The notes under the pieces were generated by a model. That model was not told the origin of the DNA. It searched no databases and was given only the letters and a program-made list of their open reading frames with translations. Below are positions 3,394 to 40,356 of a stretch of 64,000 bases of DNA, one piece after another. Where the stretch lies: assembly GCA_002189035.1 (NCBI GenBank), contig CM007990.1:1178001-1242000 (forward strand), in the 5' to 3' direction. This DNA is from Utricularia gibba (taxonomy: Eukaryota > Plantae > Magnoliophyta). A program made the position numbers and the translations under genes. Position 1 is the stretch's first letter, and each line of letters starts with the position of its first letter.

Positions 3394-3545
3394 GAATTAG
3401 AAGCACATGCTGAACATTATTTGGAACAAACCTGCTTTACAGAACAATTATTAAACACTGATTATACAACCAAATCAGTTTTACCAATTCTCCTTCATAA
3501 TGCTTGAATCAGGCATTTATGTTGCAGTAACATTTGTTTGTGCGA

Positions 3546-5942: not shown

Positions 5943-7526
5943 ATGGGGAGAAGAAGGCTTGAGATAAAGCGAATCGAGGACAAGAGCGCTAGGCAAGTAA
6001 CATTCTCGAAGCGGAGGAATGGCTTGCTGAAGAAAGCCAGAGAACTGTCGGTTCTCTGCGGCGCCGATGTCGCCGTTGTTATTTTTTCCAGTAGCGGAAA
6101 GCCCTACAATTACTGCAGCAACAACAGGTTGGTTTCTTTGTATTTCATGCGTTATTTAGAACGAGATTCTAATCTTGATCTTCATCCAGCTTGGCCAAAA
6201 CGCTGAGAAGGTATTATAATCATGTTGAACCAGAATCAAGTCACCCCAGTGGCGTTTCTGATGACAAGGTACATGAATCTTTACATGAAAAAGGGTTATC
6301 CTTGGTGGATGATTTACCAGAAAAGGTTCAGAATTCATTCTACCTTTGAAAGTAGTAGAAGAAACATATTTTCAAATCCAGGGTTTGTGTTGCATTTGGA
6401 TGAGATATTGCATTCCATATTTGTGTCGTCAAGGCTCTCATTTGATGTTATGATTTTAGCTGGTTTTGAGGTTATGGATCCTGGATTGAATCTGTTGGCT
6501 GTTTTAGATGTAATGCTTTGGTTGGGGAGCAGAATGTTATTCACGTATGCTCTACATTTCTACATCAGGCTTGCAACTTTAAAGATCCAGAATACATCAC
6601 AAGAGAGGAGCTTCTTCAAGTTGTGGAAAGGCAATCATGAGTTTTGTTAATCCTCCGAATGAGTGACTGTGCTTTTAAAATATCACATTTGACACAGGGA
6701 ACTCGAGGAGCTGGATGGTGACCAGCGCAGCGATGTTGAACTTGTTCTTCTTGAAGACCAACTGCAGAATGCATTAGTGCAAACTAAAAAGGCGAAGGTT
6801 CCTTCTTTAAACCCCTCTCCAACTCTCGAAAAATGCATCTTATCAACGGCAGTTTTCTTGCATATCCCTAGGCCTTTGATGAAGTTTTACTCTGTTTTCT
6901 TGTTCATCGACGCGGTTGTCTTGACTACCAGCGATATGCTTTTTCTGATCCCTGTTTTTCCACACAAAGAAAGCCTGATTCAATTACTGTGCAGACGGAT
7001 TGGCTATTGAATGTCATCTCCAACCTGCAAGACGTGGTAAGAATTTAATATTCTCTATTGCCCTGCATACCAACTGTGGCAGCATATCGGTTTACCTTAT
7101 CACTCAGAAGTTCTTGATAGTAGATGAAATGGGGGCCTTTTCCATGCCCCTGTTCATCTTTGGAGTGTATCAAAAAAGAGAGAAATGCACTGGAACTATT
7201 CTGAGAACTAAACCACTGACTGTAACAAGAACAAAAGTCTTTGAACTCATACACCATACACAGATGCTCAAGTGATTCCTTTTTGCTACCAGGAAACCGC
7301 ACTATTGGATCAGAACAATTTCCTTGAGGACAAGGTAATCTACACGCCCTCTGACCATTACCAGCATTTGAGCATGCAGATTTGCTATCAAACACCAATG
7401 CTACATTCCATAATTAAGTTGGGATGCTGTTAAAGTGATCACAATTTGCAGATCAGCAGGAGCACTGTGAAGAATGCTGCTGCCCTGGATCTGAATGCGG
7501 TTCCTGATGGCTACCAGAGTTCATAG
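5943..7526 (+). CDS. FLC-clade MIKC MADS-box transcription factor, copy 1 (194 aa)
   Basis: Exons 5943-6127, 6190-6268, 6569-6630, 6698-6797, 6995-7036, 7293-7334, 7452-7526 (185/79/62/100/42/42/75 bp, typical MIKC sizes). MADS domain [25 protein letters not shown]; I/K region [30 protein letters not shown] resembles asterid FLC-like proteins as recalled. Intron 3 needs a GC donor. Confidence 0.88.
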
Positions 7527-10073: not shown

Positions 10074-12119
10074 ATGGGGAAGAGGAAGCTGGAGATTAAG
10101 CGGATCGAGAACAAAAGCGCTCGGGAAGTGACTTTCTCGAAGCGGAGGAGTGGTTTCCTGAAGAAGGCCGGGGAGCTGTCAGTCTTGTGCGACGCGGAAG
10201 TCGCCGTGATTATATTTTCCAGCACCGGAAGGCTGTACGAGTACTGCAGCCCTAACAGGTTCATTAACGTATTTCAGATCTCCTGTCTCTTTATATCTTC
10301 CAGCACCAGTATTAATCGTTTATTGGGGCGAGGCTGATGCTTTAGATGTTGACAAGTTTCCATCTTTTGACGACCTCATGAAAGAAATAGCTGTAATAAT
10401 GCCCTAGTTTTGCTTGTATCGAATTGTATGTGCCGATATCTTTTAACATGTTTCTGCACATGGTTTATTCATCCATTTGGTAGTTGATACACAGTTTGCT
10501 TTACATGCGTACAAATTTCTTTGTTCCCATCTTATGCTCATGAGCATTTTGATGTCCATGATCCACTACAGCACGATAAATTTCACAGTAAATGTTATCT
10601 TTAACACCATCAGGAGTACCCAAGCCCACTTTTCTCCTGTGATTTCTCTTCATCGCCAGTTATGACATGAGCATTGCCTAGAACCTTTGGTTCCTTCTTA
10701 TTATGATTTACTAACTGATAAGAAGTCCATATAGTGGTGCACTGAGAGATAGCGGGTTCATTCTCTTCACAATAAAATGCAAGCGATTGGCAAAAGCAAG
10801 AGTATGCTTTTGGTAGTGTATCAAACACGCTCTGGTGTGGTGGATATTGTTCTACAGGTTATAGTATTCATCTCTTCCCTTCACTATGATTTTTCAGAAG
10901 CCGTGTTATGATATTCACTATGTAAAAATGGGATATTTACCACTCTGAAACCTTTGTTATAATCAAGTGTTTAGATGATACCGAGTATAGTGAGGTAATG
11001 GGTTCATGATATCATATGTAAGAACTGATTTTCTTTCTGTTACTGCATATGTGGAAGTTAGAGATGAAATCATGTCGATTTTTTTAGAGAATACCAGAGA
11101 GAGAATTTCAAAAATCATGTGTAGAGAAGCAACATACGGTTTCCTTCATCGGTGTTTCAGGTTTAGAAGTTGCAGCTCATTTCATGTGGATGGCAGGTTG
11201 GATACGTAGGTTAGATGCTTAGAAACTGCAAGACGTCAAGATACTTCTTGGAAACATCATTATATATGAATTGAGAGAACACTGTAAACTCATGCGTTAA
11301 CTGAAGTATCAACCAGGGTGAAAGGAAAAAATGCTGATATCTAGGCATACTTGCCTTTTTTTCATGTTCTCATTATTGACTGTTAGTTTGTCTTTTCTTT
11401 CCTGTTTTCACTATCAAATTACAGCACTTTAACCTTGGATACACATTGTTTGACTATCACTAGCTTGGCCACAACCCTACGACGTTATTACAATTATGTG
11501 GGAACAAAAGCAAGCACACACACTGGAGATCCTGAGCAAAGGCAAATGAATTCCTATAATTTGTTCCTCAGTGCTTACTCTTCCTGGTCTTCCAGACGAA
11601 AGTCTGATGTTGCTTTTCCCTTTTTCTTTTACAGGGAACTTGAGGAGCCCTTTGATGCACAGCGCAGTGTGGCCAACCTTGCTCTTCTTGAAAATCAACT
11701 CAAAACCGCATTAATGGAAATAGAACGAGAGAAGGTTTCCTATCTAGTTTCCACCCGACTATTTTCTCATTCACTTCTCAAACATGCACCCACCGACATG
11801 TTTCGCAGCAGTTAGCATACAATGTAGTTTCTTTGTTGCATCTCTCAATACCTGTAATATGAATGGCTTTTCTGGTTTTCTCTACGTTGCTAACCCCTCC
11901 TTTCTCCTGTCCCCTTTGCAGCAGAATGCACTGGCAGAAGAACAGAGCCTCCCCGAGCTAGACAAGGTGATCATATACTTGTCCCAGATCATACTGAAAC
12001 GAGCTGCCTGAGCGAACGCTGATCAGTCTCCGCTCAACCTGCAGAGTGGCCGCAGCCACGAGAAGAACGCATCTATAGATCTCAATCTCCTCCCCGCCGA
12101 CGACGACAACCAAGACTAG
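10074..12119 (+). CDS. FLC-clade MIKC MADS-box transcription factor, copy 2, lacking the 62-bp exon 3 (~175 aa)
   Basis: Exons 10074-10258, 11464-11541, 11635-11734, probably 11809-11853, 11922-11966, 12045-12119. Open frame to a C-terminus [14 protein letters not shown]. Confidence 0.82.
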
Positions 12120-12180
12120 AACAATGAGAACGGCTCCCGCAGTTTGCTGCATCTGAACCTTTGAAGAACCATGTCGATGG

Positions 12181-12379
12181 CCGTACTGTTTCATGGCCCA
12201 TGTAGCTGACGTATTCCACCCTCTGAATTTTTTTTCATCTTATTTTTGTTAAATTTAATATTGTGCTGTTTGATTTCATGAGTACGAAGAAAATTGACTA
12301 CTTGCCATTATCAAGTTTCGAGTGGGCCCCGTGGATCTGTACGGACACTCCCCCGGTCGCATGGCGGTTTACTGTACGG
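12181..12379. promoter_or_regulatory. SBP/SPL-type GTAC sites plus a TCP site upstream of MADS copy 3
   Basis: CCGTAC at 12181, AGTGGGCCCCGT at 12321, TGTACGG at 12338 and 12373. Function inferred from known motif consensus. Confidence 0.55.
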
Positions 12380-12960
12380 ACGAGCCGACTTTTGGGGTAT
12401 CTGGGCCTTGTCTCAAGGTCAAGTTGTCGGCCCAATTGTTTTTTTTTTTTTTTTGCAAATTTGGTGATATTTTTATTACCTCCTTTTTTATGAAAAAACG
12501 GTGATTAAAATGTATTTAAATACGTAAAATTGTAATATTACGATTTATCGAGGGCAAAAATGTCACGGAATGATGGAATTTGTGTTTATTAATTAATGTG
12601 ATTTATTTTTTTTGTGTGAGAAGCTATTGACTACGTGAAGGCGCCATGGCTTTGACGTGGACAGCTGTCCGCTGGCCCCATTGCCTTTTACGAGAAAAAA
12701 GTAGAAAACCCCAATTGTCACGTCAAAATCGAACCGTAATTGAGGGCGATCGGGAGCTACCGCCGGCGAGTGTCTTCACCTCCGCCTTCCAGGCGACACA
12801 ATCGAATGGCCGACGAGGCTTCCCCGGCGGATTCTTTCACGTTTCCGCCGTAGTAGGCCCCACGCGTGGAGAGGATTCTGTTCCTATGCAACTTGCATGT
12901 GTTTTTTTTTCTTTTTTACAGTGGAATCTCGTCCATTCGTTTTGTGGAGCCTTCAAGACC

Positions 12961-13040
12961 TTACTGGATTACCTCCTGACAAGCTCTAGTTCTCCGGATT
13001 TTACTGGATTACCTCCTGACAAGCTCTAGTTCTCCGGATT
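12961..13040. repeat. Perfect 2 x 40-bp tandem duplication just upstream of the MADS copy 3 ATG
   Basis: TTACTGGATTACCTCCTGACAAGCTCTAGTTCTCCGGATT at 12961-13000 and 13001-13040. Confidence 0.97.
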
Positions 13041-13097
13041 TGGTGTTTCCCATACTTTCTCTTTGTCCGTACCCTAAATTTTGGGATTTCAGTACGA

Positions 13098-15430
13098 ATG
13101 GGGAGGAGAAGGCTGGAACTGAAGCGAATCGAAGATAAAAGTGCTAGGCAAGTTACCTTCTCAAAGCGTAGAGCTGGCCTGCTGAAGAAAGCACATGAAC
13201 TCTCGATTCTTTGCGCCGCCGATGTCGGCGTAATCATCTATTCCAGCACCGGGAAGCTATACCAGTTCTGCAGCGGCAACAGGTGCACTTCGCTTATGTT
13301 TTGAAGTTGAAGTCCGTACATATGATGATATTGCTCCATTGATGATGTCGGTGACTAGTTATGGTTTTGTTTCTTCCACATGGTTTCCATGGTTGATCAT
13401 TTCATTAGCACATATCAAGCTGATGCAATTTGCTGAGGATTCTCAGTTTCTTAAGACTTATAATCCATCATTTTCTTCGCATGTTATGGAATTCTCGGAG
13501 CATATCGGGATACTGGTGACAAGATATAACTTGCTTCCTGCTAGGAGTAAAAAGGGACCACTTGTTAATAGGTCTCTTTTGTCACCAATCATGCAAAGGC
13601 ACCACCTTCGATCACAAAAATTCAAAATGCAAAGTCGTCATTTGTAATCACACGCGAAAAATACATCAAAAAAAGACTACACTGTCAAGAGAAATGAAAA
13701 AAAAAAAAACTTAATGGTGACGCGTTGAGATTATTTTTTGGTTGACACCCTTGGTTGTGTTGAAGGAACCTGTAGTCGATACATAGGTTGAGTTAGTTTG
13801 TGAAATGTGTCGTTCTATGCCATCTGTTCATTACTTTCATTCTAGGCTCATTCTCTCCATCTTTGCCTTTAGTTTTTATGTTTTGGGGATTCCAATGTTA
13901 AAATCTTGCTTGGATGTTCTTTTCTTTGACTGTGCTAATTGTGTTATTGTCTCGGGCAGCGTGGTAGATTCTGAGTTCAACTATTCTCTCATTTTGCTGT
14001 ATCACGGCTTTATATTCTCTACCATAGAGCATCATTTGCTCTTCCAATGATTTCTTGATGTTGTATTAGATTTACTCCCCTCCCCTCTTGCAGATGCAAC
14101 TGCAGCCTTCAGATTTGAAATTCTATATTCGTGTATGGATTCTCAATGAACTATTTGATTATCTTCCAGCTTGTCAAGAACCTTATGGCGGTATTACAAC
14201 TATGTTGGGTCTGAAGCAAGCCCCGCCAATGGAGAGCGTAAGGAAAAGGTAAAAAATGAACCTCTAAAACATTAGTCTCCTTTCCTGTGGAAATGTGACG
14301 CTGATACATGTTCAAGTCTTTTTCTCCCTTTCTGTGGTTGTGGATGAATTGCTAGAAGAGTTTTCGCAGTGCAGTTTATAGCATGTATGAGTAAATATAT
14401 TATAGATAGCGTAATGCAAATAAAAATGTGTTTCTTTGATTTCAACTTGTCTTGATACAAATCTATGCCCTTCGTGTTCAGCGGTCATAAAGACAAACAA
14501 GTATTTTTCTGAGAGACAATAGATTGATAGTCAATTTTTAGTGTCGAAAGCATGCTCATATTGATAAACAATCACGGATAGCATGCTTTGGATAAACACA
14601 TGGAAGTAAGTTTTTGAGAGGTTCTCTTTCTTTTACATGTTCAGGCTGATTACTCCAAATATTCAGAATACATTACCAGCGAGGAACTCCTTCAAATGGT
14701 GGAGAGGTACTCAATTTGTTCATTCATGTTTACTTCTTGGCCTTCCAAATGAGCGGCTTTAGAGTCAAAATTTTGCATTTGTACAGCCAACTTTCGGAGC
14801 CCTGTGATGACCATGACAGCTTGGTCGACCTTGTTGTTCTTGAAAATCAGCTCGAAACTGCGTTATTGCAGATAAAAACAGCGAAGGTTTTCTTTGAATA
14901 CTTTCATGTTTTCTCAAATCTGTACGCTTGTTGCCTGGCATCTGCAGTCTTGCTTAGTCTCTGCAAATATTATTATCGACTAATCATCATTTTCTGTGTA
15001 TCCAAGATCATCATCGTTCAGCTCCTATGGTACATATATTTCATTCTTGATGATACTCACCATAAAATGCCAATTTTCTGCAGACCCATCTGCTACTCAA
15101 TACCATATCAGCCATGGAAGACAAGGTATATGAAGCATTCAAATTATGGATCTTGTATAAAAATCCATGGGGGGGAGGTGGGGATACTTTGCTTACACGA
15201 TTCCTTTTTCTGGCAGGAGAAGGCGCTGACCGAGGAAATGATTCTCCTTGAGGGCAAAAAGGTGACCACTCTCTGAATCTGAAGAGTAACTTAGCTTCAG
15301 GTACAATAGCGTTTCGTACATCAACGATGATCACAATTGACTCAACTTGCAGAATGTCCAAAAGAACGTGAATGTGAAGGAAGCAACTCTAGATCTCAAT
15401 ATGGCTCCTGATGACGAAAATGATGACTAG
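13098..15430 (+). CDS. FLC-clade MIKC MADS-box transcription factor, copy 3 (196 aa)
   Basis: Exons 13098-13282, 14170-14248, 14645-14706, 14787-14886, 15084-15125, 15217-15261, 15353-15430, all GT-AG and in frame. K region ..[24 protein letters not shown]. Confidence 0.92.
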
Positions 15431-15713
15431 AACTTGGGGTGTTCGAGGACGGGTCTGTTCGCTACTGTAATTTGCTACTGCATGCATCTGTTGGTTTCAA
15501 CTTCCATCTGTTGCCCCCGATGAACTTGAAGCTCTCCTCTCGAGGAGACAATAACTTTGATAGTCTGATTTGGTATGCAGTGGGGTTCTAAATCTGTTGT
15601 TTTCCTTTAGAATGATGTGCATTCGTGTCGTGGACGATGAATTTCAGCACACGCAGACAAGAGAATCGTGCATGGAAAACTAAAAAGAAACCACCTTTAT
15701 GTCATAAGACATG

Positions 15714-15990
15714 TGTACGGTCAGGGGGTATTACTGTACTGGTGCAATTGGGACTGACTGTACGGTCAGGGCATTATTGACACACGCTGGGGGGAATGGG
15801 GGTGGGGTAAGGGTATTCCGGACAAACGACTTCTGTACGGTCGGGGTATTACTGTACCGGTGGGGGGCGGGGGGACGAACTGTACGGTCAGGGCACTGTT
15901 GGCACACGTTCGTGGTAAGGGTTGCTCTGGACAAACGAGATCTGTACGGTCAGGGTATTAATGTAATAGCACAACGGAACTGTACGGTCA
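15714..15990. repeat. G-rich degenerate tandem repeat (~110-120 bp unit, ~2.5 units) with six TGTACGGTC motifs
   Basis: TGTACGGTC at 15714, 15759, 15834, 15881, 15943 and 15981; the landmarks GGTATTACTGTAC, CACACG, GGTAAGGG and GGACAAACGA recur per unit. Confidence 0.93.
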
Positions 15991-16036
15991 AGTGGCCATT
16001 ATTGAGGAGAACGAGTGGCCAGTAGCATGGGTTTTT

Positions 16037-16078
16037 GTGGACCCGATTCAGTGGGGCCCTATGCTAAGTGGGCCCCGT
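16037..16078. promoter_or_regulatory. Three TCP-type GTGGNCCC/GTGGGGCCC sites upstream of MADS copy 4
   Basis: GTGGACCC at 16037, GTGGGGCCC at 16051, GTGGGCCC at 16068. Confidence 0.6.
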
Positions 16079-16362
16079 TTCGGTCGGCAAGCGAAGAGCA
16101 GGAGGTTATGGGCAGCTCAGCTCATCCAATAATTACCTTCTTTTCATCTCCGGAGAAGACGTTTGCTCATGTCGTTTGTTGCTTGAAAACGACGGTGAAT
16201 GCATATGAAAAGCTTTGACCTCTGGAGTTGAGTTCGCCGCCGCGAATGTGCTGCCCGTAGAGGACGACGCGAAGTAAGGTCCTCAAACGTTGGAAAATTT
16301 TGTGAGTCGTCTACTGCCGTTCCTCTTCCCTTGGAACAAGAAATTTCTGGATTTGAGTTGAG

Positions 16363-18887
16363 ATGGGGAGGAGAAGGCTGGAGATGAAGCGGATCGAGGA
16401 TAAAAGCGCTAGGCAGGTGACGTTCTCGAAGCGGAGAAAGGGACTACTGAAGAAGGCCAGGGAACTCTCGGTTCTTTGTGGTGCCGATATCGGCGTGGTT
16501 ATCTACTCCGGTACAGGAAAGCTGTACGAGTACAGCAGCACTAACAGGTAATTGCCTTTCAACCTTGTGCGTGTCTCCGATTGCCGAGGTACTCTCCAGT
16601 TCTTCACTTTCTAATTCCGAGACCGTACATGTGATAATGCCCCAAGGTTGATAATTTGGCTTGGGGAGCTTTCCTCCTTGAAATAAGCATCTTGTCAGTG
16701 TTCAACCTTTGTTTTTGGTTCACTTGGAAATTTGCAATTCTCTTACGAAGATATTCATTTTGTCATGCAAGTTTCTAAGGAATCTGCTGTTTTAGTGTAC
16801 AAAAGCCCTTTCATGGAAGATATACATAAGTTCATGAGATGGGAAATTTGTGAGTTTCATGCAAATAGTTCTAGGTCTATTAAACACATGAAACCGTGTT
16901 AAAAGCATTGACCTTTTTTCTCTTTAAGCATGATGATTCTGTGTTCAAATATCCATTTTTTTGAAGAAGGTAAAAGTCCAGAAACCCAACCCTACCCCTA
17001 AATGCCTTGATTAAGTTTTTTGGGAAGTGTGGTTTGCTTACAAATTTGTATTTGTACATTCTTCCCGGCCCACTCGATCTTATATGCAGTAGTACAATAT
17101 TGATCTCCATTGTCCTACCATTTAAGGAAGTCTTGACGCGGGTCATGGTACTTCATATTCCTCCATGTCATGCCCCACTTTTTTGGTTGTATTGGCTGGC
17201 CATTCATGATTCCTCCTACGTTTTGTTGGAACATGGTTTTAGTTTCTCATTTGAAAACCTGTCAAAAGCACCAAGCCTGGTGTAAATACCAATGATAAAG
17301 CATAAAGATGAGCTTCATGTTGTCAACTGTAGAGCACTATCTCCTCTCACAGCAATTTCTCGATGTTTTCAATATATGTGTCTGAATTCTTGCTGAACCT
17401 TGAAATTATCCAGCCTGACAAGAACCATATGGCGGTACTACAATTATGTTGAATCTGAAACCAGCCTGGCCACTGGAGATCCAAAGGAAAAGGTAAAAAA
17501 TGAACTATTTTTATCTTCTTGTTCATTTACAGCACCCATGTCGTCCGCTGAGAATCCCTTGATAGCTTACCGACATTTTCTTCCTATTTGTGAGAGCTAA
17601 TGGATGATCAGCAGATTTCGTGCACTAGCCAACACTGCTATATTGTTGTATGAGTGAATAGGGGTATAAATATTTTCATGCAGGTTAAAGTTAAAAAGTC
17701 ATTCTTATTTTTAACCAGCAATATTAATTCTAACAAAGCTAGTGATAAAGTGAGCTTATTTATCAGAGATGCACATGGCAGCATGTGAGATTATCTGCAG
17801 GTCCCTGCCATTTTACAGAAGCAACAATATTTTGAGAGGCTCTCTCTCTGTGTTTCTTATCAGGCTGATTACACCAAGCATTCAGAATACATCACAAAAG
17901 AGGAACTCCTCCAAGTTGTGGAAAGGTGCCCCCAACTTTTATTCCTGCATGTTTCTTACTTTCTTGCCACTCTGAATGAGAGAATATACATACTCTCAGA
18001 ATTGTTCATTTTCACAGAGAACTTGGGGAGCCCTCCAATGACCAGCGTAGCGCTGTCGACCTTGTTCTTCTTGAAAATCAACTTGAAACAGCTTTACTAC
18101 AGATCAGGAAAGCAAAGGTTTCCCTTCCCTTTCAACCACACTTTTGCTGTTGTATCCATCACTTGCCTCTGAGATCTCCACGCACCCTCTGGGACCAGCT
18201 AGAGAGTTTTTTTTCTCCCTTCTTAAATCAACTGTCTTGTCCCTGACCTCATTATTGTCACTTCTTTTTCAGACGCATTTGCTCCTCAATACAATATCAA
18301 GTCTGCAGCATGAGGTACAAAGCCACCCAAATAAACTACATAAAACAAGAGAAGCTAGCTAGCACGTGATGCTCACCTGATTCCTTTTGCTGGCAGAAGG
18401 ACCTGCTGTCAGAGGAAAACAGCCTCCTCGAGACAAAAAAGGTGATCACTCTCTCAAAATGAAGACCAATTACATAATTCTAAACTCCATGAGAACGAGT
18501 TTTGAGAACAAAACTCCACACAATGAATGCTTCATTTCACTTCACTGAGTTTTTTTTTTTTTTCAAAATCATGTAAAATGGGATGTTATAGAATTTTAGT
18601 TGTATGATTTAAAATAAAAATAGATTTCATGATATTAAATTCAGTTATGTAGAAAATAGTTTTGAAGCTTTTAGAAGGTTTAAATTATTCCTTTGAAATA
18701 AAACTTACTACTAAACACTACCTTAGAGTTTCGGGTTTGATTACCCTTTAAAATAGTATCTTATACATTAAAAAAACATGAAAATTTTTTAATTTTTTTT
18801 AGACTAATGTTGCAGGTTGGCACAAGGAAGATGGAGGTGAAGAAAATAGCCCTAGATCTCAATGTGGTTCCTGATGACCAAATCTGA
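16363..18887 (+). CDS. FLC-clade MIKC MADS-box transcription factor, copy 4 (194 aa)
   Basis: Exons 16363-16547, 17414-17492, 17864-17925, 18018-18117, 18273-18314, 18397-18441, 18816-18887, all GT-AG and in frame. Confidence 0.92.
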
Positions 18888-20863
18888 AAATTACAATGTA
18901 TCATGAAATTGGTTGTCATCTATTTTTTTTCGTATTAAATAATATCATAATTTCAAATATATTTTTACATATTTAATCGTATTTCAAAATTTTTAAAAAC
19001 TTGTATCGTATGAATAACATTGATCAATAACATATAACAATGTTCAATTTTCTTGCTTTTTATTTTACAATGTTTCTCATATAATACAAAAATATTATAC
19101 ATTTTTTTTGGAATTTTATGGGAGGATGGCATGGTAAAAAAAGTTGATATTGATAGATCACATTTTCTTGCATAGTAAGTGTCACCAAAACTTAAAAGAG
19201 TCATGAAAATAGTTTCATATGTTGTATTTTGGATTATTTAGACTTGAAAAACTATAAAATAATTTAAATAAATTGAATGATAATTATAAAAATTATTGAA
19301 AAGGATGTAATTTATGAATTATTAAAGACAATGAATTAGCTAAAAAATGAATGATAGTTTATACATTCAATCTTTTGAATAATTGTATGTTAGAATTTAA
19401 TATTTTAAATCCTTTTTAATGTTGAAAAATAAAAAATATCTATTTATTGATAAAAAAAACGTAAGAGAGAACAAAATTTTGACATATTTTTGTAAATATC
19501 TAATGTGTTTTCATATTAACACACATAAGTTATATTAAATTAAAAAATAATATTAAATTAACAATTATATATGCTATTAAGTGTGGGCCTGGGCTGGGGC
19601 CCATGTCCACATCCACTACTTAACAGTCATTCTCATTGAATTTGATTTAACAGGGGCACTTTTGGAATTTTGTGAACAATTTTATTTTAAGAATCATTTA
19701 TACATGTTTGAAAGTAAAAATGATTATTAAAATAAAAATAATTTTTTCATGAAGAAAAACTAGTTTTCATATCCTATCAATCAAATTCAGTTAGAGTATT
19801 AACATTTCTATTTTTTAAATATGTATTGAAAAAAAGATTTTCAAATATTTCATAATTTTATTATATGAACAATGAATTTTGAGAATTAGTATAATTCTAT
19901 TAAAAGTTTGAGATGTTAATTTGTATTAAAATTGATTTTTAAGAATAAATTCTAAAATTTAAATTTATAATTATATTCATATTTTTATAATAAGTACAAT
20001 CATTTGTTTTTTAAAAATAAATTTAATTTTATAATATTTTTTAAATAAATATTGAAATATTTAAAAATTATTATAGTAATGTAAAATATAATATTTTAAA
20101 ATATAATACTTTATAAACTTTATTTTTTTACTTATAAAAATCACTTATTATTATTATTTTCACTCTAAATATAAATAAATTTTATAATAATTATTTTTAA
20201 AAATACATTCTAGCAAAATTTTAAATTTTATTTGGACTAATATTTTAAAACCTAATTTTAATTTATTTGAATTTAAATAAAAATAATCTAAAATTAAGTC
20301 TTTACATAATATTCAATTAATATTAAAACATTTGAAATTAAATAAAAAAAATATAAGAATATCACTACCTTCATATAATAAACAAAACTCTCTCTATCTC
20401 GAATTTATTTAAATATACGAAATAAATACAATATAATTTACAATACTTATATTAAACCCTTGCAATCCCATGAATCAAACACACATGGCGCAGGAGATTC
20501 TCCAGGTGGAGAACTCAAACTCAGGCCTTCCTTCTTCTTGTGTCATGGCCAAAGTACACACAGACAGCGCGTGGATCACCGTCGCCGGCCATGTCCGGCG
20601 ACCGCCATTGTCGTCACTTGTTGTGCTGAGAACACTATACAGTTTGGGACAGCTACTCTACTTCCTATACGGTGCAAGAGAAGCCTGCCTGCGATGCCTT
20701 TCCACAAAGAATCTTCTTCTACAGGTGGCTGTGGATGCACCTGCTGTGGAAGAAGAAGCCACCGGAAGATGCCCATGAGGGTGATTCTGTGGGAAACGAG
20801 GCGGAGATAGATGGATGTGGTGGACTCACAGTTGTGGAAGGATTCTGAGAAGTTTTCTAGCTG

Positions 20864-27550: not shown

Positions 27551-28508
27551 GTGATAACCAAGTGATGAATTCAAATGTATGGGACATTTGAACTAAAGTA
27601 ATAAACTATGGTAATCAATCCATATTTTGATTATTTCAAACGTGAACATGAACTTATGTCAAATTAGTTTGTATTATATTGGGACAACTAATTGATAACC
27701 AAGTGATGAATTCAAATGTATGGGACATTTGAACTAAAGTAATGAACTATGGTAACCAATCCATATTTTGATTATTTCAAACGTGAACATGAACTTATGT
27801 AGAGCAAGTTTGCATTATATTGGGATAATTAAGTGATAACCAAGTGATAAATTCAAAATGAATGGTACATTTGAACTAAAGGAATGAGGTATGGTAATCA
27901 ATATATATTTTGATTATTTCAAACTCGAGCACGAATTTATGTAAAACTAGTTTGCATTATATTGGGACAACTAATTGATAACCAAGTGATGAATTCAAAT
28001 GTATGTAACATTTGAACTAAAGAAATGAACTATGGTAATCAATCTATATTTTGATTATTTCAAACTCGAGCACGAACTTATGTCAAATTAGTTTGTATTA
28101 TATTGGGACAACTATTTGATAACCAAGTGATGAATTCAAATGTATGCAACATTTGAACTAAAGAAATGAGCTATAGTAATCAATATATATTTTGATTATT
28201 TCAAACTCGATCACGAATTTATGTAGAGCTAGTTTGCATTATTTTGGGATAATCAAGTGATAAATTCAAAATGAATGGTACATTTGAACTAAAGGAATGA
28301 GATGCTGCAATCAATCCATATTTTGATTATTTTGAACTCGAGTATGAATTTATATCGAGCTAATTTGTATTATAGGACAATCAAGTGATAAGCAAGTGAC
28401 AAATTCAAATGAATGGGACATTTGAACTAAAGAAATAAGGTACTTCAACCAATCCATATTTCAATAATTTCGAACTTGAGCAGTAACTTATGTGGAGCTA
28501 ATTTGCAG
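27551..28508. repeat. Satellite-like tandem array, ~7 units of ~141 bp, with trimeric higher-order structure
   Basis: The unit anchor GATAA(C/G)CAAGTGA occurs at 27553, 27694, 27835, 27977, 28118 and 28387; the sixth unit has a short deletion. Periods are 141-142 bp. Confidence 0.96.
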
Positions 28509-39914: not shown

Positions 39915-39935
39915 AAACCCTAAACCCTAAACCCT
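39915..39935. repeat. Three tandem plant telomere units (AAACCCT)3 / telo-box cluster
   Basis: AAACCCTAAACCCTAAACCCT read directly; one further telo-box near 39625. Confidence 0.85.
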
Positions 39936-40356
39936 AAAACAAAATCCTGAACCTTACACTATTGTTAGTACGAGTAGAATTGAAGGTGACCTATCACACC
40001 CAAAGCGATGGATGTGTAAATTTAAATGGATGTATGATTGGCTTTAAAATCATGGTGTGAATGCAATACCATCATGTGTGAACCATCCATCTCAGACAAA
40101 TAAGATATTATATTTATAAAAAAAGGTCGTAATTATTTGCTGGTGGGGCCCATTGCGGGTCCCCATTAATTTACAATTTTCTGGTGTAATTTTCCTGCAT
40201 TCCTACGCTTTAGTCGTTCTAATTCCACGTTACAGCTGCTATACGCTTCGAGTGTTGAAAGTCAACCAATCTAGTTTGGTGTAACCGCAAAGTCAACAGC
40301 AGCATAGTTGGTCTTCGGACAAGTTGTGTTACTATGGATTATGTGATATGTAATTT

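Follow-up and report, generated by a model that had tools for sequence, protein, structure and literature searches.

The extended SBP-type motif GWCCGTACA was found at 10 positions in the 64,000-nucleotide stretch of Utricularia gibba DNA analysed here (hereafter the window), as compared with 0.26 expected, and all 10 were located at the 5' ends of copies 3 and 4 of a tandem series of FLC-like MADS-box genes. Six of these sites form a cluster upstream of copy 4, two lie in the copy 3 promoter, and one each is in intron 1 of copies 3 and 4. As judged from this distribution, the motif is probably a real regulatory element, and the six-site array represents a good lead for a putative enhancer.

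Four MADS first exons were detected by tblastn in tandem on the plus strand, at 5943, 10074, 13098 and 16363, in a region where genes are spaced about 3 kb apart. For copy 4, six GT..AG introns were defined by RNA contigs aligned to 15000-19200, leaving exons of 185, 79, 62, 100, 42 and 45 nt plus the last exon, and these contigs demonstrate that the gene is expressed. The best 120 matches of its protein carry PF00319, most of them also PF01486, and those with descriptive names are mostly AGL27/MAF/FLC-like; the top relatives are Lamiales proteins of 55-60% identity, including two partial proteins of Genlisea aurea. Taken together, the MADS and K-box domains, the exon structure and the closest relatives assign copy 4, on sequence grounds, to the FLC/MAF clade of MIKC MADS-box genes, in agreement with the first-pass annotation, in which the gene downstream of the cluster was called FLC-like. 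An LDLN..PD motif of the EAR type ends copies 1, 3 and 4 (7482-7508, 15386-15418 and 18852-18884, tblastn).

The promoter of copy 4 is short, and most of it is occupied by the array. The array begins 33 nt past the end of the copy 3 RNA contig (15670), and the gap from this 3' end to the start of copy 4 mRNA is about 510-555 bp, of which the array, at 303 bp, takes up over half. The array lies about 175-525 bp upstream of the copy 4 transcript start, and its end is about 175-220 bp before that start; a variant RNA contig may carry the copy 4 5' UTR to about 16180. No RNA contig covered the array, copy 4 transcripts beginning downstream of it. Of the words sampled from 15671-16060, 25-61% were present in DNA runs from two studies and none in the listed RNA runs; since the stretch is contained in DNA runs of two studies, the array is real DNA and not an assembly artefact, and it is not visibly transcribed. 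In an Rfam search with E up to 1 the array had no hits, with two chance-level hits in intron 1, and there is no sign of the array as a known RNA gene. In one RNA run, two versions of the copy 4 5' UTR were observed over 16227-16378, both well covered, with 1 versus 9 differences in 152 nt; only the reference version was seen in the DNA run examined. The second version may represent either an allele or a homeologous copy of very recent origin, and its promoter would make an ideal comparator for that of copy 4.

Besides the SBP-type boxes, two class I TCP-type sites lie downstream of the array and ahead of the transcript start; the second (16068-16075) falls within a 12-mer, AGTGGGCCCCGT, common to the copy 3 promoter (site 12322-12329). 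The window has six class I TCP-type sites, of which four are in the copy 3 and copy 4 promoters (12322-12329, 12856-12863, 16051-16058 and 16068-16075); the total of six against 3.0 expected is itself no significant excess. At Arabidopsis FLC, VAL1 is recruited by RY motifs located where intron 1 begins, leading to silencing in response to cold. Two RY motifs (CATGCA) were noted in the 5' part of copy 4 intron 1 (16764-16769 and 16858-16863), and TGCATG also occurs at 15479 and 15669.

Features at the 5' ends of copies 3 and 4 (positions in the window; the strand of a box is that of its CCGTACA reading)
Feature	Position	Strand	Evidence
Copy 3 promoter box 1, GTCCGTACA, oriented as the array	12338..12346	-	
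Copy 3 promoter box 2, GTCCGTACA, 35 bp after box 1, oriented as the array	12373..12381	-	
Copy 3 intron 1 box, GTCCGTACA, 30 nt after the donor	13312..13320	+	
Copy 3 last exon and 3' UTR	15351..15670	+	RNA contig, tblastn of C-terminal exons
Diverged tandem array, ~2.7 copies of a 110-122 bp unit	15703..16005	.	Repeat search, self-BLAST, alignment
Box A1, GACCGTACA (SBP consensus CCGTACA)	15714..15722	-	Exact match
Box B1, GACCGTACA	15759..15767	-	Exact match
G-quadruplex-type motif, four G-runs of 3-6, unit 1 spacer	15789..15813	+	Regular-expression scan
Box A2, GACCGTACA	15834..15842	-	Exact match
Box B2, GACCGTACA	15881..15889	-	Exact match
Box A3, GACCGTACA	15943..15951	-	Exact match
Box B3, GACCGTACA	15981..15989	-	Exact match
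Two class I TCP-type sites (GTGGGNCC), between array and transcript start	16051..16075	+	
Copy 4 5' UTR, minimum extent	16227..16362	+	RNA contigs of two runs
FLC/MAF-clade MADS gene copy 4, 7 coding exons, 194 aa	16363..18887	+	RNA-contig GT..AG joints, assembled CDS, homologs
Copy 4 exon 1	16363-16547	+	
Seventh exact box, copy 4 intron 1, 74 nt after the splice donor, opposite orientation to the array	16621..16629	+	

The first-pass annotation had listed six exact copies of TGTACGGTC on the plus strand, at 15714, 15759, 15834, 15881, 15943 and 15981, two additional TGTAC at 15735 and 15853, start-to-start spacings of 38-75 bp, and a position 370-650 bp upstream of copy 4. All of these were recovered: the spacings are, in order, 45, 75, 47, 62 and 38 bp, the cluster lies 373-649 bp from the ATG at 16363, and a seventh copy absent from that list was identified on the minus strand at 16621-16629. 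Comparison with shuffled controls gave an expectation of 0.13 copies of TGTACGGTC per window under dinucleotide-preserving shuffling, and the 7 copies observed were reached in none of 100 shuffles.

All six array boxes have the same orientation. The array is not built of six equal units: it consists of about 2.7 diverged copies arranged head to tail (periods of 120, 109 and 122 bp; unit-to-unit identity 72-88% by repeat search, self-BLAST, which gave 72-75%, and alignment), and each unit contains one A-type and one B-type box, with A-to-B spacings of 38-47 bp. The A and B sub-units have a block of about 25 nt in common, beginning CTGTACGGTCAGGG, which is more than the 9-mer alone. As head-to-tail copies of one unit the array is a tandem repeat, or minisatellite, and the earlier proposal that tandem duplication multiplied the sites is borne out. 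Tandem Repeats Finder, run over 15000-17000, did not report the array because its units are only about 72-75% alike. In unit 2, two long G-runs stand at the place matching the G-quadruplex-type motif of unit 1.

When read on the opposite strand, TGTACGGTC becomes its reverse complement GACCGTACA, which fits exactly in six of six array boxes the SBP consensus CCGTAC(A/G) quoted from Liang 2008 and Franco-Zorrilla 2014 (PMC6508781), as anticipated when the boxes were first compared with the CCGTAC/CGTACA flanks of SBP sites. The GTAC core and CCGTACA are present at all 10 sites, six in the array and four outside. GTAC is the accepted core of both SBP and copper-response elements (PMC13666632; PMC10535918), and a total of eight GTAC are located in 15714-15989, so that multiple cores near a transcript start, as in copper-response elements, were also found here. 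The CCGTAC match is not exclusive to SBP proteins, the same motif having been assigned by modelling to a non-SBP factor, bHLH28 (PMC13234004).

The four GWCCGTACA sites outside the array lie within the 2.3 kb concerned with a Poisson P of about 3e-10, or 1e-7 if the copy 3 pair is taken as one event. When all 8-mers were compared between the copy 3 and copy 4 regulatory regions with no motif preselected, CTGTACGG ranked first among window-unique words, and the only other extended element common to both regions was the 12-mer with a class I TCP-type site. Residual homology cannot account for the common motif, since the total of 8-mers in common was 82, against a random expectation of 68 +/- 15. 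By self-BLAST the copy 4 upstream region aligned only to itself and to copy 4's own last exons, and 12 of 22 fourfold sites differ between copies 3 and 4 in exon 1, so that neutral sequence must be near saturation. The intron boxes of the two copies lie within a common short island, the introns being unalignable elsewhere. Outside 12100-16700, CCGTAC was found 8 times in about 59 kb, which is chance density, and the motif has no occurrence at copies 1 and 2, except GCGTACAA in the copy 2 intron. The recurrence of the extended motif in non-repetitive form at copy 3 and in both introns argues for a retained cis-element, and we infer that selection has kept these sites.

The base preceding CCGTACA is T in 3 of 3 copy 3 sites and A in 7 of 7 copy 4 sites, in promoter and intron. 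This difference could reflect within-gene homogenisation or tuning, the independent sites being too few for significance; concerted evolution of the flanking base was considered and set aside as not significant, since each gene offers no more than two or three independent sites. The alternative that the sites are 3' elements of copies 2 and 3 was rejected, given the intron sites in copies 3 and 4 and nothing similar after copy 1 or copy 4.

Conservation within the array is supportive only. In the three-unit alignment the invariant columns are clumped, with runs of 12, 9 and 8 (shuffle P of 0.0015 and 0.00017), and the 9-mer shows changes at 0 of 54 positions against 20 of 99 elsewhere in the block common to the sub-units (Fisher P of 9e-5, the core having been chosen post hoc). 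The same shuffle test, however, gave P down to 0.0006 for a control array at 27552-28507 (141 bp x 6.9), presumably neutral, and the column-shuffle P values are therefore discounted. The earlier observation that the spacers have diverged while the 9-mer is conserved carries less weight than it seems to, because the control array is clumped in a similar manner. Since the within-array test overstates significance, the case for a regulatory element rests mainly on the sites outside the array. The control array, in an AT-rich stretch, has 84% matches and is also readable at a 283-bp period; a further repeat, of the interstitial telomere type (AAACCCT, x 3.4, perfect), is located at 39915-39938.

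FLC-like loci of three other Lamiales, Perilla, Phlomoides and Erythranthe, contained no site cluster within 5 kb upstream; upstream they showed only single sites, at -1466 and -2186, and in Perilla a group of three was found within an intron. The cluster is thus not deeply conserved. From these comparisons it is no general feature of Lamiales FLC-like genes and appears to be specific to this lineage. The site at the Phlomoides rotata FLC-like locus (position 3535) is a single CCTGTACGGTCAA, 1466 bp upstream of the ATG, which matches the last array box exactly over 11 nt. The Perilla trio comprises CCGTAC three times in 80 bp, far into intron 1 (locus positions 10591-10672); either could be due to chance. 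Two Genlisea aurea contigs begin 76 and 175 bp before the ATG, so that the comparison covered the genes downstream of their promoters, and only the MADS exons matched the window. A look-up of the exon-1 peptide for other assemblies of the locus gave no match.

The reading that we favour, to which we assign about an even chance, is that an upstream pair of SBP-type sites and one intron 1 site are ancestral and were kept in copies 3 and 4, and that the pair was tripled in copy 4 to give a homotypic cluster. The ancestor of the two copies would probably have had this layout of paired upstream sites and one intron site, which is still seen in copy 3; tandem duplication in copy 4 would then have brought a pair-carrying unit of about 115 bp to about 2.7 copies, yielding six sites. 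SBP-domain (SPL) proteins, if they are the factors concerned, would occupy each CCGTACA independently, and transcription of copy 4 would then follow SPL activity more steeply than that of copy 3, the input being either the miR156-controlled age pathway or SPL7-type copper signalling. The binding by SBP proteins, the direction of their effect and the tie to plant age or to copper are predictions. Several observations count against this reading: an SPL activator input to a putative floral repressor runs counter to the usual logic of the age pathway, copies 1 and 2 are without the motif, the other three Lamiales are without an upstream cluster, and, as discussed above, conservation within the array is not decisive and CCGTAC is modelled also for bHLH28.

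It is conceivable, though we consider it unlikely, that the array is a neutral minisatellite that arose from intergenic DNA through slippage or unequal exchange, with functionless GTAC boxes and with both the SBP fit and the apparent conservation due to chance. Tandem duplication is indeed ongoing here, as seen in the 141-bp array and in a 40-bp duplication at 12961-13041, and the clumped invariant columns of the neutral-looking control, as well as the orthologues lacking the cluster in other Lamiales, are in line with such an origin. This explanation, however, accounts neither for the four 9-mers outside the array, at the paralog and in both introns, nor for CTGTACGG as the top common word of otherwise unrelated regulatory regions, and although the units are old (about 25-28% diverged), six of six cores are intact. 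The 40-bp duplication (2.0 copies, 100% match) lies just upstream of the copy 3 ATG, and its perfection indicates that promoter duplications are still arising in this gene cluster.

Two further explanations concern the identity of whatever reads or carries the boxes. According to one, for which the chance seems rather low, a real cis-element or repeat effect operates without SBP proteins, either through another factor that reads the CTGTACGGTCAGGG block or through small RNAs and DNA methylation drawn by the repeat, which would set the expression state of copy 4. Conservation does run past the SBP core into CAGGG and part of the 25-nt block, CG and CHG sites are present in every box, a non-SBP factor has been modelled with CCGTAC, and the array is directly upstream of the transcript start. 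The part common to copy 3 and the introns is, in contrast, the SBP core with one or two flanking bases and without CAGGG, and the expression of copy 4 implies that there is no constitutive silencing. The other, which takes the boxes for the subterminal repeats that transposase would bind in a DNA element or MITE inserted before copy 4, is highly improbable. Short conserved boxes with variable spacers do resemble the subterminal repeats of DNA transposons, but a search of 15300-16400 revealed no inverted repeats, and hence neither transposon ends nor a hairpin; moreover, all boxes share one orientation, and the motif at copy 3 and in the introns belongs to no repeat. The dispersed repeat that the first-pass annotation had named as a finding that would undermine its proposal is likewise not supported, for no second copy of the unit is present in the 64 kb. 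No contig in four runs, one of them a DNA run with 293,524 contigs, covered 15705-15986 at a likeness of at least 85%, which weighs little since that DNA run lacked the locus itself as well. Repeats make up only about 3% of the Utricularia gibba genome (PMC4972453).

On the preferred reading of an ancestral SBP pair tripled in copy 4, a wider proposal may be advanced tentatively, as a possibility that we hold to be somewhat doubtful. In this compact genome an SPL module, with miR156 age input or SPL7-type copper input, would control FLC-clade repressors from upstream, reversing the order known from Arabidopsis, where FLC represses SPL15, and one paralog would have become more sensitive through the tripled ancestral pair in a promoter of about 500 bp. 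Such a change would exemplify cis-regulatory subfunctionalisation through the tandem amplification of sites, in a genome whose bias is otherwise towards deletion. Should the sites prove functional, they would provide a new link from plant age or copper status to a repressor family of the vernalisation type, and a clean natural divergence of paralogs by site number, two in copy 3 versus six in copy 4. The copy 4 promoter is small enough for complete dissection. If the sites are functionless, the locus is an old minisatellite and a caution that conserved cores in tandem repeats need not imply function.

SPL proteins are already known to activate MADS-box genes that promote flowering. No description of SPL control of an FLC/MAF-clade gene was found in the literature searched, a limited library that gives no proof of absence, and to that extent the earlier remark that such wiring was not known to be described still stands. 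In a 2026 review of SPLs in flowering, FLC and MAF are never mentioned (PMC13666632).

Among known systems, copper-response elements consist of clustered GTAC to which CRR1 binds in Chlamydomonas and SPL7 in Arabidopsis, for instance in the promoters of Cu-microRNAs (PMC10535918). The array resembles these in that a number of GTAC cores lie no more than a few hundred bp ahead of a transcript start, but differs in that the longer GWCCGTACA is kept, whereas copper-response elements need little beyond GTAC, and in that no copper-related gene is involved. The promoter repeats of Arabidopsis FWA and SDC act via small RNAs and DNA methylation. Like these, the array of copy 4 is short, tandem and placed immediately before the transcript start of a gene that regulates development; unlike these, it has a recognisable transcription-factor motif.

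SBP proteins were first found in Lamiales, SBP-box sites are present in the promoter of the MADS-box flowering gene SQUAMOSA of Antirrhinum, and AP1, FUL, SOC1 and AGL42 of Arabidopsis are targets of SPL3/SPL9. The sites described here are similar to SBP sites of MADS genes with respect to GTAC and CCGTAC(A/G), the location in proximal promoter and first intron, the MIKC-type gene and the Lamiales plant. They are different from those of SQUAMOSA, AP1, FUL, SOC1 and AGL42 in that the target belongs to the FLC/MAF clade and, with its C-terminal EAR-type motif, is a putative repressor, not a floral promoter. They also differ from known SPL targets in the multiplication of the sites to six by tandem duplication, the binding here being predicted. 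In the FLC/PEP1-SPL15 circuit of Arabidopsis and Arabis, FLC represses SPL15, and SPL15 and FLC are reportedly discussed together in published work. The present sites would likewise link the FLC clade to the miR156/SPL age pathway, but in contrast to that circuit they would place SPL upstream of an FLC-like gene.
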